From sequence record PV764938.1: a stretch of 64,000 nucleotides of DNA; one strand, 5' to 3'. Positions 9,696-31,721 of the stretch are shown piece by piece. Made by a program: the position numbers and the translations under genes. Numbering within the stretch: position 1 is the stretch's first letter; every line of letters starts with the position of its first letter. The notes beneath the pieces were generated by a model. That model was given only the letters and a program-made list of their open reading frames with translations. It had not been told where the DNA came from and did not search any database.

Positions 9696-12600
9696 TTATA
9701 CCGTCGGACCCGGCTTACCAACGTTAGCTGCACTCCACCATGTCTTCCAGTTCTTCGAGAAGTCCATTGTGGAATGTGCTCGCATGTTTGTCGTGTTGAA
9801 CGTGAGCAGCGCGTGTAGAACAGAACCGTCGAACACCTTAGTGTTGATCGGAGCATCGATCATGCGCGAAGTGCCACCTGTACCACGACCCAGACCTGTG
9901 AGTGTGAACGTACCGTCACCGTTATCAACGACACCAGTATAGGTGATACGCTCAGTGCCAACCCAAACAACGCCATCAACATAACGACTCAGGATATCGT
10001 TGATACGAGCCTTCAAAGCTTCTGTAATATCAACGTTATCAGCTATAGCGACTGTATATCCAGGCTCAGTTGGGTGCGGCTGTTGCCACAGAGCGTCAAT
10101 ACCCAAGCTACGGTAAATACCCAAAATGCGTTGTTCTTCAACCACGTAACCAATTGGTTTGTATTTGAATTTGATTGTTCTAATATTGTCTTCGACTTCA
10201 TTAGATGTGATGGAAACTACCTGACCGATTGCCAAAGTGTCTATTTCAGACGCGTTAGCCAAAACCAAGTCTTTACCATTTGGTGATTTCTTTAGCAAAT
10301 CACCAACAGACAACGAGAATGCAGGATCCACCTTGAATTCATAACTTACATTGTTTGGACGCTTTGCTTTCAGATCTCCAACAGTGAGTGTTTTTGGATT
10401 GCCATTATTATCAGTGAAGCTAACACCAATGCTGAGTGCGACCTTTGCCTGCAATTCTGCAAGATTCGGATTTGCCGGGTCATGCAGCGGGAACAGACCA
10501 GGAATTGCAACGCTCATTGTCTGATCCGCTGGCATCAACGGAGCCGATAGTGCGATACCATCTTCCTCGAGGAATACACCTTCCCAAGCACCAATCGAAT
10601 CCTTGAAGAAACGGAATGCTGTGGGCTGTGTTGTTGGCATATCACCCTGCGATGTCGCCTGACGATAAACAGTCATCATCAGAGGATCACGAACACGCAA
10701 GCGAACAAGCTCGTCTGGATGACCACCATCGAACCAAGGCTGAACTAGCTCACCACCTTCGAGGCGAATGTCTTCGACACTATTAGAGTCTTCCCAGTTG
10801 CTCTGGTTCGGATTGATGTTCAAGTCACGACCCACGTAGTATTCGTACTCGTTTGCCCAACCCGTCTGGTAATCCCATGCGAACATGTCCCAGAGACCCT
10901 GGCCTAGATCAGCGCCATCAACGACTGTGCCGCGGAAATCACAACCACGAATCAACGTGTCGAGTTCCTTGCGCTTCATTGTCGCACTTGGCTCGTAATA
11001 GCGTTCGATGCGATCGGCGAGGCCACCATTGATGTTCATGTCCCAACGAACGTTGTAGAACTCAACGAACTCGGTTCCGCTCCACATGTAAGCGGCCGGA
11101 TCACGATCAGGACCAACCTTCACGTTGACGATATCGCCTCGGTTGATCAGTGCTTGTCCACCCGCGTTCACAGCATTCTGCGAATCACGAACCAACTGAT
11201 CACGCAGAGTTGTCGAATCAACAACCAGCTGCTGATACTCTTGACCCGGAATACGATACAGATCTTCGAGTTCACCGAATGTCTTCGTGTATGCGCCGTG
11301 GACCCAACGCTGTTCGTTACCATCCCACGGAACTTCCGGAGGAGACCAACCAACAATCGGGCTGCACGATACACGATCGAACAACATTGTGATCTGCGGA
11401 CGACGAACAGGATTCCACTTGTCGTCCCAGTTCTCTAGCGTGTAGTTGGTCTTCTGGTAGTTTTCGTACCAGTGACGCATCTGAGGATCCGTACGAAGCA
11501 CAAGCTCATCAGCTGGAACCTTCACGTCCAGCTTGCGCCAGCTTTGTGTGGTTTCATCGTAGTAGAGTGGCTTGTCGAAGTCAGTGATCGTCAAGTTCAT
11601 GTGTTCCATTGGTGGGCTCAAGCGACGAACAAAATCACGTACCTTAACGTGGTATGGCTTCACATCATTGATGTAAGACAAGATGTTGTCGATTTGATCC
11701 TTGAACACGATCGGGCTCTGGTTCAACTGCTCGTTGTAGCCGGCCATGTAGAGGAACGATGTCTTGAAGACCCAGTCCGTATAGTTGTGCTGGGAGACCG
11801 CAGTCTTTACCATGCTGAAGAACAACTTGTTACGTTCCAGAGACGTCAACAGCTTCGTGCGAAGTTCTGTGAGCAAGTATTGGAGTTCCCAAGAACCATC
11901 ACGCTTCTTCGAGCTACCAACCTTGTAATCGTTGAAGCCGTAGACCATCATGTTCTTCGCGTAGAAGTTGTCGTTCAGGCGAATCGTTGCCTTCTCCTTA
12001 GCGACCTGAATCCAGCTGCCATCCTTGTAGACGTACCAAGCCCAACGAGGATCTGTTGGACCCTGAGTATCGACTTGAACAAGTGTTCCACGGAGCAGAG
12101 TTGTGTCGAGCTTCTTATCGGCATCACGCTCTTGACGAGTCGCATAACGCTTGACTGGGAAGTCGTTGATGCTCCACTCTGGATCGTACCAATCCACAGC
12201 CTTCCACATCTCACCCTCACGCATACGATAACGCTGAGCCTTAAACAGAACGTAACCGGTTTCGCTTGCACGAGCATCCGATGGCAAATAGATCCAAAGT
12301 GTCCAGAGACCGTTTGTCTCAGGAGTACCCTGCATGAATACCTTCTGACCCGCCTTCACAACGCCAGTTGCGGAAAGCTGATCACGCTCAAACTCGTCAA
12401 CGACTTCGAACGCATAGGAATTTGCATCGGGCTGTGGCTCTTCCGATTCGAAGATCTCACGCCATTCGTAACGTGTATCCAAGAATGCTTCGCTTGCGAA
12501 GATTTCATTCATTGTGTCAACGAAAGCCTTACGAGCTTCGCGACCCGGAATGAGGAATCCATACTGGTCAACATCCGACTTGAACCATGTCTGGCCTGGA

Positions 12601-15600
12601 CGGCTGAGAGCGCCGTAACGCTCACGCTCGTTGAGCCATTGATCAGGAACCTTACGGAATGCTTCAACTGTGCGAGTCTGATAAACCTTAGAACCAACAC
12701 CGAAACGCAGAGTACCAACGCCGGTCAGACCAACAAAGGTGTTGCCGTTCAGGTATTCGTATTGGATCCAATAGTCACCGATCTTGACTTCGCCTGACGG
12801 GTCAAAACCAGTTGCATCATCAACCGTGAAGCTTGTGGACAACGAGTTCAGTTCAGTTGTCAGCGAACCAACAAAAGTCTTGCGCTGAGTATTGTTGTCC
12901 CAACCAACAAGCGAGTCACGCATCTTGATCCAGAGGGATTCGTCGATGTTGTTGCGCTCATCGTTTTCACGAAGCAGCTTGTATTGCTTGTGGACAAGAC
13001 CATCATTCGCAGACTTCTTCCACTCGATTTTCAAGCTTGTGGAGTAATCGTTCACGTATTGCTTTGCACCACCTACGAGAACCTTGTTCGTGTCAACAAT
13101 TGCGAACCATGGGATATCAGCGGATGTTGGATCCTGAATGATCGTCGCAATCTGCATTGCTGTGAGGTTGCGATCTTCACGGAACGGAACAGTGGCTGAG
13201 TTGCGCACCCAGAAGTAATAGACAGTTTCGTTGCGGCTCAATTCTTTGTTGTACTCGGTGCGCTCAACCCAGCTTGCGTTGGTGTTGATGTCCTTGACAG
13301 TACCCGTAGGCTTGTGCTCATCGGAATCAACACTGACGTTACGCTTCTTCTCGACTTCTGCGGACCAGAACGCCGGAGCAACCGTCGAACGTGTCCATTC
13401 GTAGATGTCGATTGTGATGCCCGGAGCCAACTTGCCCCAGTTCTTCCACTTGTATTCGGTTTCGCCGATTTCGTAGTCCAAGTAACGAGTCGTAGAGATA
13501 TCCCACCAAATGTCACCGACCTTAGCAGAATCCCAAAGACGTTCATTCGAGTTGATGCTCTTCGCCAGCGGACCATTCGAGTAGATAGCGGGATCGTACT
13601 CCAGAATATAGGAGATTTCGCGCTTTGCCGAACCCGGGATAAAGCCCTTGAATGGATCGTAAAGCTGAAGCGTCTGTAGTGTTTCCGATGTGTTTACGTC
13701 GTAGATCACTGCGGACTCAACCATGTGAGTATCGATCTTCGGAGTTTCCTGGCGAATTTCCTGCCAGATGGCACCGTCGATGGAATCCATACGCTCAAGT
13801 ACGCGCCAACCCGTTACAGCTTCCGAAGCAACTTCCCATTCCTGGGCAACGAATGCATCTGTTGTAACGCCATGCGTTGTGAAGCTCATTGTCGCTGTTG
13901 TGTAGTTGGTGCCGCGATTCGTCATTACGATCGCCTTAATGCGAGCTGGCTTCATAACGCACTCGAACACTACTGGAGTATCTGAGGCATCATTGACAAC
14001 CGTTACGATCGGCGCTGCGTCATAACCCCAACCTGCATCCAATACGATTACTTCTGTGATCGCACCGTTTTCTACCTTGCTGATACGAGCCTCTGCACCC
14101 TTACCCGACAGGTTCTTCGGAGTAATCAAGAGCTTCTCAGTTCCAGTGTAACCGATGTTTGCCTCAGGGTTCATGACCTTGATTTTGTAGACGCTTGTCG
14201 GAGCAAGCATCACATAAGCGGCAGCATCTTCACCATCACCGGTGATTGTTACGGTTGGCTCGTGTGTGTAGAGCGTGCCCTTGTCCGTGATTACTGGACG
14301 ATCCAGTGACTTGATGTCGTTGTCTTGTGGAACAATCGAAGCCTCAAGACCCGAACCAGTCTGGATTGCACGGTAAACAACACCATCGCGAGTGATGAGT
14401 TCATGATACTCATAACGCTCACCAGCAGTCCATTCCACAGCACGCTCAAGTGTCGAACGACCATCATCCAAGAGGATACGGTCACCGAGCTTCCAATCAT
14501 CGACTGGGATCAACAGCGGATCTTCTGGACCCTCATTGTTGTCAAAGCGTACGGAGTTCCAAGCGAAAATGTCGCCACCGGAACCTGTGATGCTTGTGCG
14601 AACTGGATTGTCGTCGGCATCGAATAGTTCGAAACCACTGGTGTAGTGGTAATCAACTACCAGCGTGAGTAGACCATCGCTTACACCATCGCTGTTGTAG
14701 AATGCGACCATCTTGTTGTCGCTGTTGATGCGCTCGTTCAAGTAGAACGGCGTACGAGTACCAGCAACCTTCAAGTCGATATCGCGTGAACCAGCAACTG
14801 TGTTGTGTACGGTTACCAGCGAACGCGTCGATGTTCCGATAACGCCGTTTGTTACGTTCTTTGTCGTAGTTGGTTCACCAGTTGTCGTATCCAGAACATA
14901 CTCGGGGAATTCAACCTCGTAAGTGGTACGTTCGTCAACGCTGGAGATTGGCAATTGTACGCTCTGCACGTAGAAGTCCGGCGAGTTAGTTCCAGTCGGA
15001 GCAGGGAACTCAATTGGTGTGCTCTCATAGACCCACTCGTTTACGTTCTCGGCCGTTGCAGGCTCGATTACGCGGTGACGCCATTGAGCCATAACTGTTG
15101 GCTCCAGAGTCTCCGGAGTGGATTCCAAAATAGCCTGTGCAGGTGCACCACCGTTTGGTGTCTCGACTGTGATTGTTGATTCACCACCAACCCACGAGCA
15201 CTTACCCCAATCCGTAATTGTGATGCTGCGAACAGTCCACAACATGATTGGTTCAACAGTTGCGCCTTGGCCACCACCACCGCTTACAACGACACGTGGC
15301 TCAGTGAGATAACCATCACCAGTGTAGGCGTGGAACTTAACCTCAGGAGCACTTGCGTAACCGGCACCGTTGTAATCGATGAGAACCGCAGTCACTACAC
15401 CGTTGGAGATTTCTGCCTTAACCGCAGCGTGCGATGTTGGGTTACCGCCTTCGAATGTTACGAACGGACGCATTTCCCAGCCCGAACCACCTTGGAGATC
15501 CGAAATACCACCAACGCCACCAGCGTTTAGGTTTGCTGTTGCGGATGTTCCAGTACCTGCGCCTGGGATTACGACTGCATCAAGCTTTTCGCCATCGAGG

Positions 15601-18600
15601 ACAGCCGTGCCCTTAGCACCAGTACCGCCGCCACCGATAACAGTGATCGTCGGAGCACTCGTGTAACCGGTGCCTGGGTTGGTCACAGCATAACCGATGA
15701 TAGTTCCAACAATATTGGCCTTCGCTTTGACTCCAGTTGGTCCTAGGACCGTGATCTTAGGCTCGCTTGTAGCTGCATAGCCCCAACCAGGATTCGTTAC
15801 TGTGATCGCGCTAGGAGTCACGAATACGTTTCCGTTGCGAACCAAACGAACAGTTGCGGCTGTATCGTCTTCGTTCAGGACAATTGTGTCATCGTAGACG
15901 TTGACTGTGATTGGGCTCGAATACGAGAACGTTGGACGACCCGGAGCCGGCTTCACGCTGCGGAAAGCAGTCGAAGAGTTGACCGCACCGATGAAACGAT
16001 CTGTTTCAGTGAGTGTACCAATTGTGATCGTCGGGTTGTTTCCGGCTGGGTATGTGAATGGACGAACAACCGAAGCCGTGATCTTGTTGATCACGATACC
16101 CGAGTCTGCCCACAGATCCATGATCGGAATCTGTACCAACGAGTTACCATTGTTGCGAAGTGTTTGACTTGCATCGATGAAGATCTTTGCGCTGTTCTTG
16201 AACTTCGCCTTGTAGGTGTTCAGAAGCATTTCCGTTGTGTTATTGTCCGGCAGGATACCATCGAGGATGGTCTTTTCCATGCGTGCTTCTGCCTGTTCAA
16301 TATCGGTCTCGAACGTTGGGTTCAAGCTTACGATTTCCGGACGAGGCTCCTGCGGGTTGTGATCGATACCCAATGCATCAAACATGTTGACGTTTGTGGA
16401 AACTACCGTGCCCTGAGTAGAGAAGCTCTGCGGACGAGTCATGTTTACGTTTGCGGATGTATCACCGAAACGGAAAACATTCCAATCACCATAACCGGTG
16501 TCGTAGACCCATGTGCGATCACCCGGCAATACGATTTCACCGACGAGTTCCAGATTAGCCGTAACTGTCATCTGACCCGGTGCAATTGCAAGACCAGTTG
16601 CCTGAGTCACGAACACATACAGAGCATTCTCATCGTTGAGCTTGCTGGTCAAGTATTCGAATACTTGATGTGTGTAGGTCTGGAGCTTATCGGTCTGAAC
16701 CGAAGTCTTCTCCATGAACTTCTCGGGCTCAGCGATAGTACCGATGGAAACGATTACTTCGGCTTCGCCAGCTTGTGTGAGTGGGAATGCTTCAACAATG
16801 TCAACGACAAAGTTCTTGATTCGGTACATGCCCTGGGACAGGTTCGGAACAATGTTGATCTTACGTGGTGCAGTAGAAGATTCCGCATACTTGATCGTTA
16901 CGGTGTTCGTGATCGCAGAGGATGGTTCCTCGCGCTGGATTCGACGATACAACGCATTGAAGTTGTTCATTGTGGTTGCAGTCCACTGAACATCATCCAG
17001 ATGAACGTAGCCGGCCGATGGCAAGTTGCCCTTCTGCTTTGCCTTAACATCGATGAGCGGCCAATCCGGATTCTGTGTGGAATGGCGCCATACCCAACGA
17101 GGATCCTTGTGCATGAATTCGCCGGTCTCGTTGTTGAACAAGTCGTAGATCTTTGTTGCCTTGTCGTCTTCAGTCGCAACAAACAGACCCGTGTAATAGT
17201 TCGGAGTAAACTCGAACGTGAATGTGATCTCCAGGTTACCGCTGTCCTGTGCATTTGTGATGTATGCGGCAACCTCTAGAGCGGCATTCGAGATCTGCTG
17301 GCCATCATCGAGAATCACAGTCTTCGAGCTACGAGTAGCCAAGTTGACTGGACCGACATAACGAGCATTGTCGTCTACGTCGCCGATTGTGAGCTGTGGC
17401 TGAACACCGTTGAACTCATCGAGAACCTTGATCGTGAAGGACTTCAGGATGATTCCCTCAACACGCTTGAACTTTGCAAGCTCTACGATGCCGTTTGTTG
17501 GCGGATCCTGGAGCGTAACAGATGCGGTTGCAGGAGTTGTTGGGTTACCACCGACGAACTCAATCTGCGGTGCAGTTTCAAAACCGCCACCACGATTCAA
17601 TACTTCAACACCGCTGATCGAACCACCAGTTACGGTAACCTGTACGATTGCGCCAGTGCCTGTACCAGTGAAGCGAACGCTAGTTGCTGGATCATATCCG
17701 GAACCTGGGTTGCTTACTGTGATAACTGTTGCGCGACCACCGGAAACCTTAACGCCGATACGACCTGCTGCCGTGAAGTTGAAGTTCGGGAACAGAATAT
17801 CACCAACGCCTTCGTAACCAGCACCTGGGCTTGTCAACGTAAGTTTTGTAATTGCACCGGTTTCAGTAACTTCGGAGATCACAGCCTTTGCGTTTCCGTT
17901 ACCACCAGCGAATCGGATTTCCTGACCCACTGCATAACCGGAGCCAGCACCTGTTGTACCTTCCTGCGGAATAACATAAACCGAGAGGATCTTGGAAGAG
18001 TCAAAGTTGACACCGGTGACTCGTGCAGCCGCACCGAAGCCTGTGCCGTCGATTTCAACGACGTCGCCTTCGAAGAAGCCTGTGCCACCCTTGAGAACCT
18101 TGAGCTCAGCAATACCGGAGTTCTTCCAGTTTAGGATTGCCTTGAGCGATGCACCCGAAGTGTCGCCGATTACGTTAACAGCCGGAGCCTCAAGATAGCC
18201 AGCACCGACGTTGGTCATCTTGACCTTCTTGATGCCGTTGATGCTGTAGGTCGCACGAACTGTTTCTACGTTCTTCAGGTAATCCCAGTGATCAGCATCC
18301 CAAGCCAAACGCAAGTCCCAACCACCCTGACCGGAGCCGTTGAATTGGAACATTTGCGGGCTGTTCTTGAAATCACCCTGCTTGATCAGGAAGTCCATGC
18401 TTGGACGGATCTCGCTTGCACCGTATTCACCAATACGGAAGCCCCACTCTTCAAGAACATTCAAGCCATCGTTGTGGCGAACAAACTTGCTGCGGAACAG
18501 CTTGCGCATTGCAGAGATCGTACCCTTCTGCTGGATAACACCCTGGTGGAACTCGAATTGGTTCGTAGGTGTCATCAACAGGTTGCTGAGGTATTCCTTC

Positions 18601-21600
18601 TCCTGGTAACCGAAGTTTGCACGAGCGCGATCCTTCAGGTTGCTGTTTTCGATGGACTCGATGTCGAAGAGACGACGGAAGTCATCGGCGGCCTTTTCGA
18701 AGTTCACAGTCAGCTTGTTACCGGTTACGAGGAAGCCAGGGGCTTCAACGCGACCCTTCCAGAACTTTGTCTTGAATCCCTGCAAACGCAAACGATTCTG
18801 ACGAATGTTGAATAGTGGCGAGTAAACGATGTCACCGAAGATCGTCGTATTGTTGACGACGATTACATGCTCGATTTCACTTACGTGGAGACGGCAAGCA
18901 AACATTTCCTGACCACTGCGGGTCTGGATAACAACTGAACCTGCATCACGAACAACGTTTGTGTTGTAGGCCTTGATTGGGTTACCCAGCTTGTCCAGGA
19001 TCGAGTAAACGCCGTTGACGATCTGTTCGATTGGCTCAACATTGCCGTGATCGGTTACGAACTTGATCTCCGCACTGTTTGGCATCAACGAGATCATGTC
19101 GCCTTCTTTGACATCAGCATCTTGTGCCCATGCGAGGAAGTCCTTGAGGCTCAGTCTCCAGTCGTTAACCGTGGTATCATCAACGCTTACGGAATCAAAC
19201 TTCCAACCACGCGAAACCAAGTAACGCTCGTAGCCGCTGATGAATGTTGCCATTTCCTGTGGTGTACGGATAAGCGAACCAAACGGAATACGCTCGACGA
19301 TTGTGTCGTTCTTTGCGTCTCGGTAATACTCAACAGCCGCCGCATCCGCATAAGCTGGACGAGCAACTTCTAGCCAATACTGAGGCTCAAAGCTACGCAG
19401 GCTAGTATGGGTTTTGATCGCACGGTAGAACTTGTCCAAGTAGCGAACCGTTGTGTTCGTCGGATAGTAAGTGTTCTGCTTCCAGTTAGGAATGCGAACA
19501 CGCGAACCTGCACCTGCTGTAACAGAGATTGCACGACCACCAACATCGCTTGGGATGATCTTGAATACTGGATCCAGGATGTCATAGCCGAAGATCTTCC
19601 AACCATTTGTGGCCTTGCGAACAAGAATACCACCAAGGAATTCTTCACGGATGCTTGGGCTCTTGTAGAGCTCAACAGCGACATCTTCTGGTGGCAAACG
19701 ATCGATGTTATCGGAGACCACGTAAAGGGAATCAGACTGTGTGAAACCAGCAACCTTGTATGCGAGCTTCACATCGAGACCACGAATGAGCTTACCAAGG
19801 TTCTCAGCGATATCCTTGTTCTTGCTCTTCAGGTAATCGACAACCCACTGCTGAGTACCATGACGATAAGCAACGGTGCCATCGAACAGAAGTTCCGAAT
19901 GAACGTATTCGTCAGCATAAGGGAAACCAAAGCCCTGATTCGCAACGAGATCCAAATTGCGTTCGATGTTCCATGTTGTTTCAACGAAACGTGGTGGCTT
20001 CATCAAGTAGCAAGCCTGAGCCAACGCAAACGGATACCAGAAGCTCTGCTTCCATGCGGATTCAGCCGGAGCACCATCACCCCATACCCATTCGTCAGAG
20101 GCCTTAACCGTACGAGGCGGAGTGTTTGTGATCTTTGCCTGTAGCGGATCCAACAGGTTACCCTGATCATCAACTGGGAGCCAGTTCAACAAGTTCGGCT
20201 TTGCGAAACGCGCATGTGTTCCCGCGTTTGGACCTTCAGCGATCTTGCCGGCCTGAATATCGCGCCACATCAAAACGTTACCGGAACCGTACGGAGCTAC
20301 GCCATAACGGGTTTCCCACCAGGATGGCTGGTATTCAAATCCAAGCATTTCCCACGGATGGGTGTGCGGACGATCCGTGCCATAGTAGAAGTTGTAGATG
20401 CCTCTCCAGTGTCCTGGGAGTGGCTGATTGTCACGGTCAACGCAAGAACGCCAGTTCCATGTGAATGGATCGTTTGCGTTGTAGGTGTCGTTGACTCGGT
20501 AATCGATGCCGAAGTTTACGGCCCACTTCTCGAACATTGGACGCAGAATTGTGTTCATTTCTGCATTCGAATATTCGGCGGAGTAGAACTTGTTGGAAAC
20601 AAGCGACTTGTGGTCGAAGAAGCCTTCTTCGCGCTCACGAACGAACACTGGTGCGCTGTAGTAGATACGGCTTTCAAGTTCCAGAGTTACGGCATCACGA
20701 ATGTCCGTGAAGGAACCATCTGGGTTGATTGTACCGTAGCAGGGGAACGAGCTACCATCGTGACCGATGATGAAGTCCTTGTTGAGCTCCTGGTCCTTAT
20801 ACGTGGACGGAACTTGGATCGGGTAGATGCCCAAGAAGCTCGGTGTCGGTGGGATGAATGTCGGAGCGGATGAACCCTCACGAGCAGCCATCTGGGAATA
20901 GTAGAACGGGAAGTCCTGCGTAAAGCCCTTCGCGATTTCTTCAAGTGCGAAATCAACCCATGCAGCCGGAGTTGCAGAGTTTCCGAGTCTGTTGGAGATC
21001 ATGAATTCTTTAATCTTCTGGTCAAACTTACCACGGAAGCGAGCGTACTCGTCCTGCGCATAAGCCGCAGACTTCACGAAGTCGATGTCTTTGTTGGAGT
21101 TCAACAGCATCGTACGAAGCAGCGGTGCAGTATGCGAAACAATGAATGTACCCTTGGACAGATCCTTCGGGATATCCTTCCAGTTATTGCTAGAGTATTC
21201 GAGACCTTCAAAGCCTTCTTGCGAACGAATCACACCAATGAATTGCTCGAAGAGATCACCACGGGTTGCGTAGGTGATTTGGTCCCACTTCGGGTTTGCT
21301 TCGAGGTTCAGAGGAATCTCATACTGACCCGTAGAGCTCAACGGCTTGTTTGCGGGGTTGAACGTTGCAACATCAACGCGGTCGCCATCCTCCAGATCTA
21401 CAAGGAGAACCTGGTTGTTACGACGAATGTAATCGACGCCCTGCTTCAGCTCAACATTGTTGCGCTTGACCTTGAGGTTCTGTGCGATTGGCTCAACTGG
21501 TTCCTGGCTTGCTGTGAACAAACGGTGACCGTTTGCTGCGACAAACTTGTCAACAACCATCTGGCGGCTCTGTTCAGCCACTGCATACCAATCGTTCGTC

Positions 21601-23363
21601 AAAATCTGCTTAGAACCGCTGCCGATCTTGTAAAAACGTTGTTCGGGCAGATCATAGGAATCAACACCGATACGGTAAGAACCCGTGTAGGTCGCCAAGT
21701 AGTTCTCGAATACGATCTCACCCTTGGAGTCATAAACTAGACGGATTCCGAGAACCGTATCCGTGACCGAGCTCAATGTGGAGTCTTCACGATAACCGAA
21801 GAGTCGGCAGCCCTGGAAGTTGCTGTTTGGATAGATACCAACGTCGTCGAATGCAACACCGTTTGCATCATACAAGTAGAACAGCGGGAACTGGTTAGCT
21901 GTGAGCTTGCGCTGAGCTGTCTGCCAGATTTCACCGTTCCAGTGCATGTTCATGCCACCCAACGATGTGCCGAAGAGAACGTCAACGGATTCACCAATCG
22001 TCGGAGCACCCGAAACATCAGCACCATCAGCAACGAGAGTTGCCTTCATCTTGCCGTTTGTTGGGTTGAAGCTTACACGATAAACGCGGTTTGTGATTCG
22101 AGAGTCATCGTCGTTGATGACAAGAACACGAATAACATCGTCGTCACCATTAGCGGAGATCCATTCGCGATTCAGGATTGTGCCGTCGATGCGCTTGGTC
22201 GAATTGACTTGTCCGTTGATTGCCGTGAGGAAATCGTTGACACTGTGGGAAACCAGATGAACAGCCTTAAGCTTGCTCGAACCGAAGTTGAACAGCTGAA
22301 TGTTGCGAACGAACTCGATAATCGGACGCTTTGCCTGTGCGTTCTTGAGGCTTTCCTTTGAGAAGTTCAGCACCAAGCTCTTGTGGAACCAACGGTTGCC
22401 AGTGGACCATGGGTTGCCATCAGAAGCGCCACGCTGAATGACGATGTGATCCTTCTTGAGACCCAAATCCGGAGCATCATCAGGAACCAATACGATTTCT
22501 TCACCAACACCTTCAACGATGAAGATCTTACCGAGGAGTGCCTGTTCCTTGTCGTTCTTAACGACGATTCGCAGATTCGACTCAAGCTTCACATCGTTCT
22601 CGAACGCAAATGTAGACTGACCGATGATATCCTGCAGAGAGGAAACCGCTGTGAAGACCTTAACGATTGTGTCCTTCGCAGGAGGCGGAGTCAGTGTTAC
22701 CTGCTTCGTGTTTGCATTGTAGGCGAACGGAACCTCGATACCATCGACGGTTACCGAGACTTGCGCCGCAAGCACAGGCGCCGGGTAGTTTGTGGTCAGA
22801 TTGAAGACGCGAACTGCGCCATCACCCACATACTTGGCAGCATGACCGCGAACCTCAACAGGAGTCGGGCCCTCAGGGATCCAGAAGTATTCACGGAAGT
22901 TCAAAAACTTATCGAGGTCAACACTTGGGCACCAGCTGAAGTAGTTCTGGGAGAACAAGCGGTGATGGTTGTTGACGAGACCACCTTGGAAACGAATGTT
23001 GTTGATGAGGTCTTCGTAGAAGAGCAACGCATTGTTATCGCCGTTCGAATCGATGGAGACCATGCTTGGTTCCAGCTGATAGAACGCACGTTCCTTGGTT
23101 TCTTCTTCCAAGTAATAGTTGGTATCTTCTTCCGAGTAACTGACTGGGCGGCCGATATAACCGTTCAGTGGCTTGCTCTGACCAGGTTCAAACAGGTGAT
23201 CCGCAGAAGCCGCGAAGAACTTCTGCAGAGTTTCCGTTTGGTTTACACCTGGGAGCAAGTTGACCACGTGGCGCTTATCAAAGTTTACTTTGTCCACGTT
23301 GGCGCCAGAGAAACGATACGAAGCGTTTAGTTGCTTACGATTATCGGGCAGCTTGTCTACCAT
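9696..23363 (-). CDS. Giant baseplate wedge protein (gp7-like), 4555 aa
   Basis: Uninterrupted 13.7-kb ORF directly after the gp6-like gene; many (N/G)xGxGY..APxV repeats like those in gp7 of T4-like marine phages. Confidence 0.75.
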   Translation of the reverse strand: MVDKLPDNRKQLNASYRFSGANVDKVNFDKRHVVNLLPGVNQTETLQKFFAASADHLFEPGQSKPLNGYIGRPVSYSEEDTNYYLEEETKERAFYQLEPSMVSIDSNGDNNALLFYEDLINNIRFQGGLVNNHHRLFSQNYFSWCPSVDLDKFLNFREYFWIPEGPTPVEVRGHAAKYVGDGAVRVFNLTTNYPAPVLAAQVSVTVDGIEVPFAYNANTKQVTLTPPPAKDTIVKVFTAVSSLQDIIGQSTFAFENDVKLESNLRIVVKNDKEQALLGKIFIVEGVGEEIVLVPDDAPDLGLKKDHIVIQRGASDGNPWSTGNRWFHKSLVLNFSKESLKNAQAKRPIIEFVRNIQLFNFGSSKLKAVHLVSHSVNDFLTAINGQVNSTKRIDGTILNREWISANGDDDVIRVLVINDDDSRITNRVYRVSFNPTNGKMKATLVADGADVSGAPTIGESVDVLFGTSLGGMNMHWNGEIWQTAQRKLTANQFPLFYLYDANGVAFDDVGIYPNSNFQGCRLFGYREDSTLSSVTDTVLGIRLVYDSKGEIVFENYLATYTGSYRIGVDSYDLPEQRFYKIGSGSKQILTNDWYAVAEQSRQMVVDKFVAANGHRLFTASQEPVEPIAQNLKVKRNNVELKQGVDYIRRNNQVLLVDLEDGDRVDVATFNPANKPLSSTGQYEIPLNLEANPKWDQITYATRGDLFEQFIGVIRSQEGFEGLEYSSNNWKDIPKDLSKGTFIVSHTAPLLRTMLLNSNKDIDFVKSAAYAQDEYARFRGKFDQKIKEFMISNRLGNSATPAAWVDFALEEIAKGFTQDFPFYYSQMAAREGSSAPTFIPPTPSFLGIYPIQVPSTYKDQELNKDFIIGHDGSSFPCYGTINPDGSFTDIRDAVTLELESRIYYSAPVFVREREEGFFDHKSLVSNKFYSAEYSNAEMNTILRPMFEKWAVNFGIDYRVNDTYNANDPFTWNWRSCVDRDNQPLPGHWRGIYNFYYGTDRPHTHPWEMLGFEYQPSWWETRYGVAPYGSGNVLMWRDIQAGKIAEGPNAGTHARFAKPNLLNWLPVDDQGNLLDPLQAKITNTPPRTVKASDEWVWGDGAPAESAWKQSFWYPFALAQACYLMKPPRFVETTWNIERNLDLVANQGFGFPYADEYVHSELLFDGTVAYRHGTQQWVVDYLKSKNKDIAENLGKLIRGLDVKLAYKVAGFTQSDSLYVVSDNIDRLPPEDVAVELYKSPSIREEFLGGILVRKATNGWKIFGYDILDPVFKIIPSDVGGRAISVTAGAGSRVRIPNWKQNTYYPTNTTVRYLDKFYRAIKTHTSLRSFEPQYWLEVARPAYADAAAVEYYRDAKNDTIVERIPFGSLIRTPQEMATFISGYERYLVSRGWKFDSVSVDDTTVNDWRLSLKDFLAWAQDADVKEGDMISLMPNSAEIKFVTDHGNVEPIEQIVNGVYSILDKLGNPIKAYNTNVVRDAGSVVIQTRSGQEMFACRLHVSEIEHVIVVNNTTIFGDIVYSPLFNIRQNRLRLQGFKTKFWKGRVEAPGFLVTGNKLTVNFEKAADDFRRLFDIESIENSNLKDRARANFGYQEKEYLSNLLMTPTNQFEFHQGVIQQKGTISAMRKLFRSKFVRHNDGLNVLEEWGFRIGEYGASEIRPSMDFLIKQGDFKNSPQMFQFNGSGQGGWDLRLAWDADHWDYLKNVETVRATYSINGIKKVKMTNVGAGYLEAPAVNVIGDTSGASLKAILNWKNSGIAELKVLKGGTGFFEGDVVEIDGTGFGAAARVTGVNFDSSKILSVYVIPQEGTTGAGSGYAVGQEIRFAGGNGNAKAVISEVTETGAITKLTLTSPGAGYEGVGDILFPNFNFTAAGRIGVKVSGGRATVITVSNPGSGYDPATSVRFTGTGTGAIVQVTVTGGSISGVEVLNRGGGFETAPQIEFVGGNPTTPATASVTLQDPPTNGIVELAKFKRVEGIILKSFTIKVLDEFNGVQPQLTIGDVDDNARYVGPVNLATRSSKTVILDDGQQISNAALEVAAYITNAQDSGNLEITFTFEFTPNYYTGLFVATEDDKATKIYDLFNNETGEFMHKDPRWVWRHSTQNPDWPLIDVKAKQKGNLPSAGYVHLDDVQWTATTMNNFNALYRRIQREEPSSAITNTVTIKYAESSTAPRKINIVPNLSQGMYRIKNFVVDIVEAFPLTQAGEAEVIVSIGTIAEPEKFMEKTSVQTDKLQTYTHQVFEYLTSKLNDENALYVFVTQATGLAIAPGQMTVTANLELVGEIVLPGDRTWVYDTGYGDWNVFRFGDTSANVNMTRPQSFSTQGTVVSTNVNMFDALGIDHNPQEPRPEIVSLNPTFETDIEQAEARMEKTILDGILPDNNTTEMLLNTYKAKFKNSAKIFIDASQTLRNNGNSLVQIPIMDLWADSGIVINKITASVVRPFTYPAGNNPTITIGTLTETDRFIGAVNSSTAFRSVKPAPGRPTFSYSSPITVNVYDDTIVLNEDDTAATVRLVRNGNVFVTPSAITVTNPGWGYAATSEPKITVLGPTGVKAKANIVGTIIGYAVTNPGTGYTSAPTITVIGGGGTGAKGTAVLDGEKLDAVVIPGAGTGTSATANLNAGGVGGISDLQGGSGWEMRPFVTFEGGNPTSHAAVKAEISNGVVTAVLIDYNGAGYASAPEVKFHAYTGDGYLTEPRVVVSGGGGQGATVEPIMLWTVRSITITDWGKCSWVGGESTITVETPNGGAPAQAILESTPETLEPTVMAQWRHRVIEPATAENVNEWVYESTPIEFPAPTGTNSPDFYVQSVQLPISSVDERTTYEVEFPEYVLDTTTGEPTTTKNVTNGVIGTSTRSLVTVHNTVAGSRDIDLKVAGTRTPFYLNERINSDNKMVAFYNSDGVSDGLLTLVVDYHYTSGFELFDADDNPVRTSITGSGGDIFAWNSVRFDNNEGPEDPLLIPVDDWKLGDRILLDDGRSTLERAVEWTAGERYEYHELITRDGVVYRAIQTGSGLEASIVPQDNDIKSLDRPVITDKGTLYTHEPTVTITGDGEDAAAYVMLAPTSVYKIKVMNPEANIGYTGTEKLLITPKNLSGKGAEARISKVENGAITEVIVLDAGWGYDAAPIVTVVNDASDTPVVFECVMKPARIKAIVMTNRGTNYTTATMSFTTHGVTTDAFVAQEWEVASEAVTGWRVLERMDSIDGAIWQEIRQETPKIDTHMVESAVIYDVNTSETLQTLQLYDPFKGFIPGSAKREISYILEYDPAIYSNGPLAKSINSNERLWDSAKVGDIWWDISTTRYLDYEIGETEYKWKNWGKLAPGITIDIYEWTRSTVAPAFWSAEVEKKRNVSVDSDEHKPTGTVKDINTNASWVERTEYNKELSRNETVYYFWVRNSATVPFREDRNLTAMQIATIIQDPTSADIPWFAIVDTNKVLVGGAKQYVNDYSTSLKIEWKKSANDGLVHKQYKLLRENDERNNIDESLWIKMRDSLVGWDNNTQRKTFVGSLTTELNSLSTSFTVDDATGFDPSGEVKIGDYWIQYEYLNGNTFVGLTGVGTLRFGVGSKVYQTRTVEAFRKVPDQWLNERERYGALSRPGQTWFKSDVDQYGFLIPGREARKAFVDTMNEIFASEAFLDTRYEWREIFESEEPQPDANSYAFEVVDEFERDQLSATGVVKAGQKVFMQGTPETNGLWTLWIYLPSDARASETGYVLFKAQRYRMREGEMWKAVDWYDPEWSINDFPVKRYATRQERDADKKLDTTLLRGTLVQVDTQGPTDPRWAWYVYKDGSWIQVAKEKATIRLNDNFYAKNMMVYGFNDYKVGSSKKRDGSWELQYLLTELRTKLLTSLERNKLFFSMVKTAVSQHNYTDWVFKTSFLYMAGYNEQLNQSPIVFKDQIDNILSYINDVKPYHVKVRDFVRRLSPPMEHMNLTITDFDKPLYYDETTQSWRKLDVKVPADELVLRTDPQMRHWYENYQKTNYTLENWDDKWNPVRRPQITMLFDRVSCSPIVGWSPPEVPWDGNEQRWVHGAYTKTFGELEDLYRIPGQEYQQLVVDSTTLRDQLVRDSQNAVNAGGQALINRGDIVNVKVGPDRDPAAYMWSGTEFVEFYNVRWDMNINGGLADRIERYYEPSATMKRKELDTLIRGCDFRGTVVDGADLGQGLWDMFAWDYQTGWANEYEYYVGRDLNINPNQSNWEDSNSVEDIRLEGGELVQPWFDGGHPDELVRLRVRDPLMMTVYRQATSQGDMPTTQPTAFRFFKDSIGAWEGVFLEEDGIALSAPLMPADQTMSVAIPGLFPLHDPANPNLAELQAKVALSIGVSFTDNNGNPKTLTVGDLKAKRPNNVSYEFKVDPAFSLSVGDLLKKSPNGKDLVLANASEIDTLAIGQVVSITSNEVEDNIRTIKFKYKPIGYVVEEQRILGIYRSLGIDALWQQPHPTEPGYTVAIADNVDITEALKARINDILSRYVDGVVWVGTERITYTGVVDNGDGTFTLTGLGRGTGGTSRMIDAPINTKVFDGSVLHALLTFNTTNMRAHSTMDFSKNWKTWWSAANVGKPGPTV

Positions 23364-27683: not shown

Positions 27684-28331
27684 GTGGATACAGAAACATA
27701 TAACAGGCTACTAATGGTACAAAAGAAACAAAAACAAGAACTCTATGTAAGTACGGATATTGAAGCAAACGGTCGGGTCCCAGGACTCTCTTCCATGCTT
27801 AGCTTTGCAAGCGCAGTATTCGACATTGACAAAAATCTCCTCGGAACATTTTCGCGCAATTTGGAATTGCTACCGGGCTCCAATCCGCATCCGGAAACAG
27901 ATGCATTTTGGAATGAATCCGAAGCAAACAAAGCCGCATACTTGGTAACCCGTGTTGACATGGTAAGCCCAGCCGATGCAATGCGTGATTACGTCGCATT
28001 CCTCAAGGATCTCCCAGGTACTCCAATTTTCGTTGGTTATCCTGCGGCTTTCGATTTCAAGTGGATCGACTATTACGCTCATGCGTTTGTCGGCGATAAT
28101 CCCTTCGGTTTCTCCCGTTGCATTGACGTTAAGTCCTATGCTTACGCGGTCCTGAAGAAGGAAAAGTTCTCCCACACTGCAAAGCGCAACATGCCAAAGA
28201 ATTGGTTCGACAATCTCCCGCACACTCACATCGCACTAGACGATGCAATTGAGCAGGGCGCAATGTGGATCAATTTGCTCCGAGAAACTACTGGTCTGCC
28301 GCGTCTTGCGGATTTGACGTTGGCTGCATAA
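27684..28331 (+). CDS. DEDDh 3'-5' exonuclease (Rv2179c/RNase T-like)
   Basis: STDIEANG (ExoI), AAFDF (ExoII), HIALDDA (ExoIII). Start may instead be the ATG at 27714. Confidence 0.85.
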   Translation: MDTETYNRLLMVQKKQKQELYVSTDIEANGRVPGLSSMLSFASAVFDIDKNLLGTFSRNLELLPGSNPHPETDAFWNESEANKAAYLVTRVDMVSPADAMRDYVAFLKDLPGTPIFVGYPAAFDFKWIDYYAHAFVGDNPFGFSRCIDVKSYAYAVLKKEKFSHTAKRNMPKNWFDNLPHTHIALDDAIEQGAMWINLLRETTGLPRLADLTLAA

Positions 28332-28372: not shown

Positions 28373-28576
28373 TTATCCAAAATACCCACCAACTACTATA
28401 TCATCCTCATTGATGCTTGGGAAGTACCGGCGTTCATCCCGGAAGAACACTGCACTCACTGTTTCCTTTGGCTTCACCACGTAAACTCCAAACTTGGACA
28501 TTTCGTGAGCAAAAACTCCGATTGTGAGCTTCCTTTTGAGAAGCTCATCAACCTGTGCCTGCTTTAGACTCTTCAT
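28373..28576 (-). CDS. Small hypothetical protein
   Basis: 67 aa, GGAG RBS, directly after the spike gene. Confidence 0.65.
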   Translation of the reverse strand: MKSLKQAQVDELLKRKLTIGVFAHEMSKFGVYVVKPKETVSAVFFRDERRYFPSINEDDIVVGGYFG

Positions 28577-28586
28577 GCGTATCTCC

Positions 28587-31500
28587 TTAAACTGGAACGT
28601 AACGAGCGGTTACACTTCCGGATTCACTCGCTGCATTCAAGCCAATCAAACCACCATTTGCGTCCAACACTGGTCCACCCGCCATACCAGGCTTCAAACC
28701 ATTGACGTCATTTGTCGCCATACCGTTTAGACCATAAACTGTCAGACCACCGGCTGGAGTTCCAGGACCCGTATACTTGACCGTCTTGTTGTTCTCACCC
28801 GTTGGATTCGCAGGCATCGAAATCAAAGTTTCTCCAAATGCGTAACCGTAGCTCTGCATTGGAACACCGTCCGATTGTAGGCCTGCCATGTTGATTGGTA
28901 CCAAGTCAGCGTAATCGTAATTGCGGATTCTGATATGTGCGATGTCCTTGGATGGGTTCATCGCAATCAGCTCTGCAATTCGCATACGACCACCAATTTC
29001 CACATAAACGATTTGTCCGATTGTGGCAGTGTCGATACCAATGACCTGTGCGTTTGTCATCAGCGTTCCTGAGAAGTTAATGACTACGCCAGTACCCACG
29101 TTGTTACCGGAGATGACTTTACCGATACTCAAACGACCCGAAGGCGGCACCGGAACGATTGTTCCGTTTTCTTCACCCTCTTCTAGCTCGGATGGCTTGT
29201 TTGGATTCTTGATTTGATCCAAAAGCTGTTCAAGCTGCTTTAGAGGTGTCTTCGGTGTCTTTCCATCCACTGTTTTTCCGTTGGTTGTCGGGAACGTTGG
29301 GAATATCTCAGCAAGGTTGTCGATGAGGTCTTCCTTCGATTGTTTTCCTTCACGCCACTTTTCGATGCCGGCCTTGACTAGCAAATAGTTGGCAATCTTG
29401 TCCTGCAGGCTTGCTGTGAATTTCTGAGTACCCGAAAGTCCCAAAGCATCACGCGCTTCCTGTAGATCAGGCTGGCTGATATTATAGCGACCAACACCAG
29501 TTTCACCACTTGGGTTAGACGGCGAAGCCTTCATTTGTTCCTGTAGCTGATCGATTTGATCCAACGTCATATTGGTCAGGTTCTTATCGCCACCACTGTT
29601 GGCTCCCTTACCAGCTGTTTCGTTGTAACCGTCACCGGCATCAGTTCCTTCGCTTTGTGCGACCTTGTCAAGGAGCGGGTTGTTTGCGGAATTGTTTCCG
29701 TTGGTTGTGTTAGGATTACCGGAGCCAGAGCCTCCACCCGAACCACCACCTGATCCGCCAGAACCTCCTCCTGATCCACCACCAGCGCCGCCAGAACCAC
29801 CACCGGCTCCGCCGCCTCCGCCACCAGATCCACCTCCACCTCCGCCAGAGCCGGAACCACCTCCGCCCCCACCAGATCCACCGCCGGATCCTCCACCAGA
29901 TCCACCGCCACCTCCTCCGGAACCACCGCCTCCAGATCCGCCAGAGCCTCCGCCCCCGCCTCCTCCAGATCCGCCGCCTCCGCCACCAGAACCGCCGCCA
30001 GATCCCCCTCCGGATCCACCACCGCCTCCACCACCTGAGCCTCCGCCGGCACCGCCGCCTCCGCCTCCACCGGAACCACCACCAGCGCCACCAGATCCTC
30101 CGCCACCGCCTCCGGCTCCTCCACCAGAGCCCGAGCCAGAACCGGAACCACCGCCTCCGCCGCCTCCGCCGCCTCCGCCGCCTCCGCCGCCTCCGCCGCC
30201 TCCGCCACCACCTCCTCCTCCGGAGGAGTTGTCGTCGTCGTCATCGGTTGGATCGTCAACGTTATCTTCAGGCGGCGTTTCTTCGTCGTCCTTCGGAGAG
30301 CCATCGCTATTTGTGTCTTCGTCTTCTTCACCGCCACCAGAGCAATCGGCAGCTTCATACTCTTCATCACCACAAACGAATTCGTGACCCTTAAATGGCT
30401 CATGTGTTGGCAAACGAGTTACAACAGAATCACGAGTAGTTTCAGGATAGCACTCGGTTAGTTCACGGTCCGGAAGTACGCAAGGATCCTTAATCTCTGC
30501 TTCTGCTGGAGGTTCTGGTTCATTTGGAGTATCCGAGCAATTCTGCATGATCTTTTCGGACTTCATCAGGATCAATTGACCCGAAGTCATCGTAAAGACC
30601 TTGTCGGAATTCACTGTTAGGTTACCACCGACTTGAAGAGAATCCGCACCCTCGATAAGAACAGAACGGTTCTTCTTGATTGTGCTGTGATATGCACCAC
30701 CAATGTCCAACTTGTGGTCCTTATTGGTGATTTGATCCCAGTTGCCAGCGGTTCCCCACTTGGTGTCACCTTCTACGAACGCATTGAAGTTACCACCGAC
30801 ATGCAAATTGAAATCTTTGTCCGAGTGCATGTTGATGCCATTCGCAGCGTGAACGTTGAATGTTTTAGCCGTATACATGTCGATGGCATCATCTGAGATT
30901 TGCACCCAGGAGTTGCCCTTCTTGGTGTTCATGTAGATGTAACCGCAAGTCTCGTGAATGAGAACCTGCACGCCACTCTTGGTACGGAAACGGATGAATT
31001 CATTTTCCTGATTATCGTCCGCATAAATTTGCGAACCGTCAGGAGTTAGGAAACCATAGACGTGACTCGGTGACTCACGACGTGCGCCAGCAGTTGTGGT
31101 ACCGCGCTGAGTGTCCGTGTAAAGTCCCTGCATTGTGAGACCTTCATGAAGAGGATCATAACGGGGACGAGTCGGATCCAAGTTGTTTCCGATTTCAGAG
31201 AATTTGTTGTATTCGCCGACTGGCGGTTCTTCTGCACCACACGAAGCTTCGTCAAAGGATTCACTAACAGGAATACCAGGAACCATGTGGTTCATGTATT
31301 GCTTATACATGGAACCAACCCAGATACCCTTGTTGGGGTCACCGTTGATGAACATGACGATGACTTCGTTATCGATATCCGGCGGAACAGCCCACCAACC
31401 ATAGGAGACTTGGGATTCCGTGTACTTTTTGCCGTCCTTGATGTTACCCTTCTTCCACAGGTTGTCCTGGTTGTTCGGGTATTCTTTGATCGGTGTAGCA

Positions 31501-31721
31501 CCCGCGAACGGGCTGCAATAGTTCACAGTGTACCAGGACTCTTCTTGGTCCGAATCACCCCCAAGGTCGGGAATCCAAACCTTGAGTCGTCCCATGAAGA
31601 TCTCATCTTCATTCTTGCGAACGAATCCAACGTAGACTTGGTTGTAGATATTGGCACGACCTGATGGCTGCTGGGCATAACCATCAGGTGTACGTTCGTT
31701 TCTGTTATATGAATTTGCCAT
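28587..31721 (-). CDS. gp5: gp5/VgrG-like central spike with appended Gly linker, lysozyme-like and degenerate trypsin-like domains
   Basis: OB-fold motifs GRLKVWIP, SYGWWAVPPDIDNEVIVMFINGD; beta-helix region; RLPTHEPFKGH; then linker and two accessory domains. Confidence 0.85.
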   Translation of the reverse strand: MANSYNRNERTPDGYAQQPSGRANIYNQVYVGFVRKNEDEIFMGRLKVWIPDLGGDSDQEESWYTVNYCSPFAGATPIKEYPNNQDNLWKKGNIKDGKKYTESQVSYGWWAVPPDIDNEVIVMFINGDPNKGIWVGSMYKQYMNHMVPGIPVSESFDEASCGAEEPPVGEYNKFSEIGNNLDPTRPRYDPLHEGLTMQGLYTDTQRGTTTAGARRESPSHVYGFLTPDGSQIYADDNQENEFIRFRTKSGVQVLIHETCGYIYMNTKKGNSWVQISDDAIDMYTAKTFNVHAANGINMHSDKDFNLHVGGNFNAFVEGDTKWGTAGNWDQITNKDHKLDIGGAYHSTIKKNRSVLIEGADSLQVGGNLTVNSDKVFTMTSGQLILMKSEKIMQNCSDTPNEPEPPAEAEIKDPCVLPDRELTECYPETTRDSVVTRLPTHEPFKGHEFVCGDEEYEAADCSGGGEEDEDTNSDGSPKDDEETPPEDNVDDPTDDDDDNSSGGGGGGGGGGGGGGGGGGGGGGGGGSGSGSGSGGGAGGGGGGSGGAGGGSGGGGGGGAGGGSGGGGGGGSGGGSGGGSGGGGGGSGGGGGGGSGGSGGGGSGGGGGGSGGGSGGGSGGGGGGSGSGGGGGGSGGGGGGAGGGSGGAGGGSGGGSGGSGGGSGGGSGSGNPNTTNGNNSANNPLLDKVAQSEGTDAGDGYNETAGKGANSGGDKNLTNMTLDQIDQLQEQMKASPSNPSGETGVGRYNISQPDLQEARDALGLSGTQKFTASLQDKIANYLLVKAGIEKWREGKQSKEDLIDNLAEIFPTFPTTNGKTVDGKTPKTPLKQLEQLLDQIKNPNKPSELEEGEENGTIVPVPPSGRLSIGKVISGNNVGTGVVINFSGTLMTNAQVIGIDTATIGQIVYVEIGGRMRIAELIAMNPSKDIAHIRIRNYDYADLVPINMAGLQSDGVPMQSYGYAFGETLISMPANPTGENNKTVKYTGPGTPAGGLTVYGLNGMATNDVNGLKPGMAGGPVLDANGGLIGLNAASESGSVTARYVPV
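29718..30227 (-). repeat. Gly/Ser low-complexity coding repeat (~170 codons)
   Basis: Nearly continuous GGN codons; 25 consecutive Gly at 30147-30221; six perfect copies of CCGCCTCCG at 30151-30204 on the + strand. Confidence 0.95.

Follow-up and report, generated by a model that had tools for sequence, protein, structure and literature searches.

Domain layout of the Phosso central spike protein

The window analysed here is a stretch of 64,000 nucleotides from the genome of the Sinorhizobium jumbo phage Phosso (PV764938, 469,473 bp; host S. meliloti), which it matches at 100% identity, window position 26000 corresponding to record position 212000. We examined the gene of a central spike protein that the record labels 'hypothetical protein', and in particular the 3′ end of its open reading frame (ORF), where an original prediction from the bare sequence had placed a catalytically dead trypsin-like protease fused to the tip of the spike. 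Sequence comparison and structure modelling identify this part as a domain homologous to HtrA-type proteases that has lost its catalytic His and Ser and has been maintained under purifying selection. The spike gene lies within a baseplate gene module, its neighbours encoding a gp25-like protein (PF04965), a 1198-aa gp6-like wedge protein (phrog_10646/219) and a gp53-like wedge subunit, in agreement with the record annotation. Because of these neighbours, and because the 1044-aa product matches PF04717, PHROG 430 and 13211 and solved spikes of contractile injection systems in the PDB, it is assigned by sequence as a gp5/VgrG-like central spike protein. The gene and its parts are the following:

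28587..31721, minus strand: central spike gene, 1044 aa plus stop (CDS XYS97457.1; PHROG 430 and 13211, 'baseplate hub subunit and tail lysozyme')
30882..31721, minus strand: gp5/VgrG-type OB-fold region, residues 1-280 (PF04717 Phage_base_V, E 5.6e-9; phrog_13211, E 7.6e-43; PDB 7aef_q and 7b5h_AJ)
30522..30881, minus strand: predicted beta-helix (needle) region, residues 281-400 (PF22178 Gp5_trimer_C over residues 288-370, E 1.1e-4, below the cut-off; the 7aef_q alignment runs into it)
30312..30521, minus strand: Pro-rich segment after the helix, residues 401-470 (C414, C424, C450, C460 and the motif PTHEPF..H, from a full-length alignment)
30231-30311, minus strand: acidic stretch preceding the leash, residues 471-497
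29718..30224, minus strand: Gly/Ser leash, residues 500-668 (169 aa; 136 Gly, 28 Ser, 5 Ala)
29208..29690, minus strand: predicted lambda-R-like lytic transglycosylase (LT), residues 678-838 (profile against 3d3d/1am7, E 9e-6; phrog_90 endolysin, E 5.6e-13)
29100-29207, minus strand: linker between the LT and the protease-fold domain
28590..29099, minus strand: predicted HtrA-like trypsin-fold pseudo-protease domain, residues 875-1044 (Pfam Trypsin_2, PDB profile matches, AlphaFold2 model, Foldseek against PDB and BFVD)

Along the protein the domains thus follow the order OB fold (residues 13-237), beta-helix (288-400), leash (500-668), LT (678-838) and protease fold (875-1044), which bears out the earlier statement that this is not the architecture of T4 gp5. 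The same layout upheld one half of the claim that the protease is fused to the spike tip: it does form the C-terminal part of a gp5/VgrG-like spike, but the 169-aa leash and the LT lie between it and the beta-helix. The N-terminal OB fold is present (PF04717, 36.7 bits against a cut-off of 23.8), and the PDB matches of this region are the spikes of the Algoriphagus and Anabaena contractile injection systems. The needle part is predicted from sequence matches, PF22178 reaching 22.7 bits, below its cut-off of 30.9, and the 7aef_q alignment spanning residues 218-314. The GGN repeats of the leash also create spurious overlapping ORFs at 29576..30403 (minus strand) and 29665..30387 (plus strand).

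The last 204 residues matched the Pfam Trypsin_2 profile over its whole length (1-144/144; E 1.4e-10, 42.5 bits against a cut-off of 27.6), and a genome scan returned 42.6 bits. A profile built from four members of the family reached E < 0.01 with 96 solved chains of the HtrA type, most strongly with Deg1 (9.5e-9), and matched Deg1, Deg8, HtrA, DegQ and DegP at E 1e-8 to 1e-7. Its alignments to HtrA structures placed TNAQV on TNYHV, KDIA on KDVA and PGMAGGP on PGNSGGP. All three peptide strings that had been quoted as HtrA/trypsin-2 motifs are found in the translation of 28587..31721, and the resemblance of the motifs to HtrA goes far beyond chance. When a 30-sequence alignment (A2) was given as input, AlphaFold2 returned a model of the protease-fold domain with the expected all-beta pattern (pLDDT 84, pTM 0.81), a confidence that rests on A2, since the single-sequence model had a pLDDT of 34. 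Foldseek searches of the PDB with the model gave MarP Rv3671c, PepD Rv0983, Deg1, DegQ, DegP, DegS and Deg8 as top matches (TM 0.65-0.72, E 1e-11 to 1e-9, probability 1.00), so that the chymotrypsin-like fold, which had been named beforehand as one of two points on which the idea would stand or fall, was recovered in the model. We take from sequence and model together that the C-terminal 170 residues are genuinely homologous to HtrA-type serine proteases, and from the model that the fold is a chymotrypsin/HtrA-like double beta-barrel. No PDZ domain was matched after the protease fold, and the protein stops ∼30 residues past the GGP motif.

Loss of the catalytic residues and maintenance of the domain

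Comparison with the His-Asp-Ser triad of HtrA proteases gave the following assignments, in which both replacements, and their codons, proved to be exactly those originally read from the sequence:

29046..29048, minus strand: Gln892 at the position of the catalytic His, codon CAG (CAC, His, in the branch of relatives that contains phage Atu_ph07)
28944..28946, minus strand: Asp926, the retained catalytic Asp, codon GAC
28680..28682, minus strand: Ala1014 at the position of the catalytic Ser, codon GCG (TCA, Ser, in the Atu_ph07 branch)

The triad is therefore Gln892-Asp926-Ala1014 in Phosso. Because both the general base and the nucleophile are replaced, the domain is predicted to be unable to carry out canonical serine-protease chemistry. 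In agreement with this, Ser-to-Ala is the inactivating change in two of the solved HtrA-type matches, as their structure titles state (3lt3, 'Ser343Ala mutant, inactive form'; 4ynn, 'S190A variant'). The rest of the cleft is intact, including GLKPGMAGGPVL, which comprises the oxyanion loop and the S1 wall, and the motifs TNAxV and KDIA. Judged by its sequence, the Phosso domain is a member of Trypsin_2/clan PA (MEROPS S1C-like) by homology and not a competent enzyme, that is, a pseudo-protease. The scanned genomes of Phosso and Atu_ph07 each contained one Trypsin_2 domain; since Phosso has no second Trypsin_2 gene, it has no active paralogue that could supply the activity.

Relatives were drawn from phage records, IMG/VR, metagenome contigs, genome contigs and a clustered protein database. 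A word-based protein search with the C-terminal region returned one relative (P0003), and more came from scans of IMG/VR, metagenome and genome contigs. Eight distinct spike-fused members were found, and they split into two branches. One contains gp699 of Atu_ph07 (45-49% identity in the domain) and the metagenomic sequence L013, both with His-Asp-Ser kept (TNAHVVG, KDIAQLRL, GMSGGP). The other, with Gln/Asp/Ala in six out of six members, contains Phosso, L008 (95%), L009/L010/L003 (71%), L011/L004 (67%, on a 480-kb contig), P0003 (56%) and L012 (52%). Homologues had been proposed as the place to look for the triad, and all 23 bacterial relatives in A2 kept His-Asp-Ser, as did gp699 and L013; the Asp column was invariant in A2, and His and Ser were present in every relative outside the Phosso branch. 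The Ala codon was GCG or GCT across the Phosso branch vs TCA in the Atu_ph07 branch, and the Gln codon CAG vs CAC for His. In BFVD, Atu_ph07 was the sole other spike-fused example.

A maximum-likelihood tree was built on A2, which includes five of the six Phosso-branch members, P0003 being absent. The spike-fused domains formed one clade (support 98/97), within which the five Gln/Ala sequences formed another (100/100) on a stem of 0.6 changes per site. Since Gln and Ala are found in all six Phosso-branch members and His and Ser in all other relatives, the sequences are most simply read as a single ancient event, in which a spike-borne protease that was active in its ancestral form became inactive in the common ancestor of the Phosso branch, a branch of Atu_ph07-like jumbo phages. 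Other parts of the protein follow the same division. The leash is present in all Phosso-branch relatives, with a different length in each, and absent from the Atu_ph07 branch. In the full-length alignment, C414, C424, C450 and C460, together with a fifth cysteine, C395, just upstream of the Pro-rich segment at the end of the beta-helix part, are kept across the Phosso branch and absent from the other, and the motif PTHEPF..H is conserved in both. This segment (30312-30540) could form a metal-binding or disulfide-locked apex behind the beta-helix.

The LT domain, which the original prediction had not described, was difficult to recognise from the Phosso sequence alone (E 0.99 against the PDB; nothing convincing in Pfam), and a family profile (A3) was needed to reach lambda lysozyme (3d3d and 1am7, E 9e-6, positions 2-136). 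The motifs SEGTD, GRY(N/Q)I and (W/F)..LP were aligned, and from these matches residues 678-838 are classed as a lambda-R-like (GH104) lytic transglycosylase. The best solved match of the LT profile was PDB 11mn chain A ('66 kDa protein'; E 2.6e-7, chain residues 267-352), which outranks lambda lysozyme. The catalytic residue is variable within the Phosso branch:

29649-29651, minus strand: Glu691, predicted catalytic Glu of the LT, codon GAA

This Glu, whose loss had likewise gone unmentioned, is kept in Phosso, L008 and L009; L011 and L012 have Ala in its place and P0003 has Ser. The Atu_ph07 branch keeps all canonical LT motifs (TEGTD, GRYQI and WASLP in Atu_ph07). According to the sequences, both enzymes of the cassette have thus lost their catalytic residues in tandem in part of the Phosso branch (L011, L012 and P0003).

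We then considered whether the inactive domain has been retained, as had been proposed, or is eroding. For Phosso and L008, the ratio of nonsynonymous to synonymous divergence (dN/dS) was 0.046 in the protease domain, 0.033 in the OB region, 0.013 in the helix and 0.043 in the LT, values that are approximate because dS of this pair is high (0.8-1.7; ∼0.9 in the protease domain), more distant pairs being saturated. The ratio of protease dN to OB dN was 1.5-2.8 in the Phosso branch and 2.1 in the Atu_ph07 branch; as these are similar, relative constraint on the domain has not been relaxed. Within the Phosso branch the protease domain was more conserved than the LT (72% vs 45% identity in L009; 68% vs 60% in L011), and the reading frame was intact and full-length in all six members down to 52% identity, with Gln and Ala fixed throughout. 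Only seven differences within the domain were fixed between the branches; two of them were the catalytic His and Ser and the other five were conservative or small (L/V, V/I, G/A, D/G, F/Y). Invariant columns were enriched within six residues of the triad positions (20/39 vs 38/131; Fisher p = 0.013), and the oxyanion-loop motif was identical in 6/6 Phosso-branch members. The low dN/dS and the fact that the active-site motifs are the best conserved ones lead to the conclusion that this is a maintained pseudo-protease. On this sequence evidence the inactive domain is under strong purifying selection, held about as strongly as the rest of the spike, and the pattern is that of a pseudo-enzyme whose cleft was kept and whose chemistry was removed, not that of a decaying relic.

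Possible roles of the pseudo-protease

From sequence and model, the domain is very probably an HtrA-like module without catalytic activity in which the substrate-binding cleft is still presented. By analogy, we infer that its function is most likely that of a peptide clamp or of a trimer module, out of the binding, decoy and trimerisation roles originally suggested. The specific mode of a peptide clamp, which is suggested because the remainder of the active-site cleft is intact, is put forward tentatively, at somewhat less than even confidence; such a clamp would bind without cleaving, as nature's version of the HtrA substrate traps made by Ser-to-Ala mutation, of the 3lt3 and 4ynn type. In their native state HtrA protease domains form trimers, as does the spike of contractile tails, and because both are trimeric the domain is probably trimeric too, a predicted assembly with three-fold symmetry being possible. 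The protease-fold and LT domains would be tethered to the end of the needle by the 169-residue leash, with a reach of up to ∼60 nm. After puncture, the clamp would keep hold of a peptide of the envelope or cell wall, and the adjoining LT domain would at the same time engage glycan. Going further, the three relatives that have lost the catalytic residues of both enzymes raise the idea that in the Phosso branch a wall-breaching cassette of a transglycosylase and a serine protease has become, in its entirety, a cell-envelope anchor without catalysis. We regard this as doubtful. The spike would in that case plant a leash-tethered grappling module in the periplasm rather than digest its way through and, if this were true, it would be a step of phage entry that has not yet been described.

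Besides the approximate nature of the dN/dS values, several points weigh against the proposal of a cleft kept for binding. The conservation of the GGP loop and nearby motifs may stem from fold stability instead of ligand binding. The virion mass-spectrometry table of Atu_ph07 lists gp696, gp697, gp698 and gp701 but not the orthologue gp699, so that incorporation into the virion, continued attachment of the C-terminal module and the position of the domain in the virion are to be read as conjectural. The sample is small, with eight spike-fused members and a single loss event. Finally, the inactive triad, the Gly leash and the extra cysteines together make one phylogenetic observation, from which no causal link among them can be claimed.

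The motifs close to the active site are the best conserved part of the domain, and this is what a pure assembly or trimerisation module leaves unexplained. Such a module would nucleate or cap the spike trimer in the manner of the C-terminal intramolecular chaperones of phage fibres and would have no host ligand; the ancestral protease would have performed a self-processing step that the Phosso branch has since given up. The C-terminal position recalls those chaperones, the trimeric state of HtrA proteases, which include the Foldseek matches, equals that of the spike, and the missing gp699 leaves room for processing. However, a flexible leash of 169 residues would transmit registry to the beta-helix poorly, and the known chaperone domains of fibres (Peptidase_S74) have a different fold and use a Ser-Lys dyad. 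We therefore consider a role in assembly alone rather unlikely, though it deserves to be kept in mind.

It is very improbable that the domain is still a hydrolase in which other residues stand in for His and Ser by a non-canonical mechanism. Asp926 and the oxyanion loop are retained, and five of the six Phosso-branch members have a His three residues past the Asp (DIAH), where the Atu_ph07 branch has Gln; yet this residue is Tyr in L012 and so is not conserved, and the nucleophile position in GMAGGP is without a Ser, Thr or Cys substitute in all six. Ser-to-Ala being the standard inactivating mutation of the HtrA family, as the structure titles indicate, and the fall of the Trypsin_2 score from 67 bits in Atu_ph07 to 43 bits in Phosso also argue against residual hydrolysis. 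Hardly any weight can be given to a functionless relic in the course of being lost, which the selection analysis already contradicts. This view could appeal to the missing catalytic residues, to the three relatives whose adjoining LT lacks its Glu and to the long stem of the Gln/Ala clade, but a dN/dS as low as that of the protease domain, undamaged frames in every member and a protease domain better conserved than its LT neighbour all speak for a module that is being kept.

Baseplate surroundings and comparison with known systems

Directly downstream of the spike gene is a 67-aa ORF (28373..28576, minus strand), and Atu_ph07 has a counterpart of the same size at the same place (gp700). This ORF was considered as a PAAR cap and discarded, being without a Pfam or PHROG match and with a PAAR gene present elsewhere in the genome. 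That gene, for a PAAR-motif protein (PF05488), is far from the spike gene in both phages (Phosso, PV764938 350768-351037, 34.9 bits; Atu_ph07, 347983-348183, 40.6 bits). As the PAAR protein is separately encoded, the needle is probably capped as in T4 and in the T6SS (type VI secretion system), in which case the C-terminal cassette would exit the helix sideways. Between the gp25-like gene and the spike gene, on the opposite strand, lies a gene for an Rv2179c-like 3′-5′ exoribonuclease (27684-28331, plus strand); the matching position in Atu_ph07 holds gp701, a virion protein that carries the annotation 'tape measure'. The gp6-like wedge gene is followed directly downstream by one 4555-aa ORF (9696-23363, minus strand), for which the annotation is virion structural protein. 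Both Phosso and Atu_ph07 encode a separate GH24 lysozyme, and a search of the two genomes found no M23 peptidase.

A literature search yielded no publication that describes a trypsin-like domain carried by the central spike of a phage, and none on Phosso. Automatic annotation already lists the Pfam domains and gives the protein a gp5/Vgr OB-fold name. The two sister lineages differ cleanly, with an intact triad in the Atu_ph07 branch and an inactive one in the Phosso branch, and cultivable phages exist for either, on Agrobacterium and Sinorhizobium respectively. This pair offers a ready comparison for asking what a protease is for on a phage needle and what a pseudo-enzyme does once catalysis is lost. 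It also shows that a further domain goes unnoticed behind 'tail lysozyme' annotations in Atu_ph07-like phages, and that homology does not allow the enzymatic state of one relative to be assigned to another, even the transglycosylase Glu being gone in three of them.

Among the known systems closest to it is gp699 of Atu_ph07 (YP_009612364, 865 aa, 'baseplate hub subunit and tail lysozyme'), an orthologue in which OB fold, beta-helix, LT and trypsin-like domain follow one another in the same order. The gene lies in the same baseplate neighbourhood, and identity is 72% in the OB region and 45-49% in the protease domain. Unlike the Phosso protein, it keeps His-Asp-Ser and canonical LT motifs, has a short mixed linker in place of the poly-Gly leash and is without the five cysteines. 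The 2018 paper on Atu_ph07 described gp699 solely as a predicted lysozyme and did not mention the protease domain. With the HtrA family (DegP, DegQ, DegS, Deg1, MarP Rv3671c and PepD), the Phosso domain shares the predicted fold and the motifs GxGxxI..TNxHV, DxAxL and GxSGGPxxxxxGxxIGIN, but it has Gln for His, Ala for Ser and no PDZ domain, and it is fused to a phage spike, whereas HtrA is a periplasmic quality-control enzyme.

Spikes of contractile tails and of the T6SS are known to carry active enzymes, and the closest known concepts are the 'evolved' VgrG proteins and the dual hydrolases of tail tips. The latter include phi29 gp13, with a lysozyme and an M23 peptidase, and the lactococcal Tal proteins, with an M23 peptidase and a Gly-rich cleavage site. 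They resemble the Phosso spike in combining glycan-cleaving and peptide-cleaving domains at the tail tip and in their Gly-rich linkers, but their peptidases are active M23 metallopeptidases and the Phosso domain is an inactive trypsin-like fold. T4 gp5 also joins an N-terminal OB fold, a triple beta-helix needle and a peptidoglycan-cleaving domain in one polypeptide, in the order OB fold, GH24 lysozyme and beta-helix. In Phosso, by contrast, both extra domains come after the helix, the glycosidase is lambda-R-like and a protease-fold domain is added. The 'evolved' VgrG proteins of the T6SS carry enzyme-type domains after the beta-helix that act on the periplasm or cell wall of the target, and their PAAR is encoded separately; V. 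cholerae VgrG3 has a C-terminal lysozyme-like or pesticin-like domain and P. aeruginosa VgrG2b a C-terminal Zn-metallopeptidase (PMC9927483, PMC6560169). These are secretion-system effectors that are active as enzymes and come with immunity proteins, and the VgrG2b protease is a metallopeptidase and not trypsin-like, whereas the Phosso spike sits in a phage baseplate context, has no gp27-like domain fused at its N-terminus and ends in an inactive protease. All in all, the order of domains predicted from the Phosso sequence resembles that of 'evolved' VgrG spikes and not that of T4 gp5.

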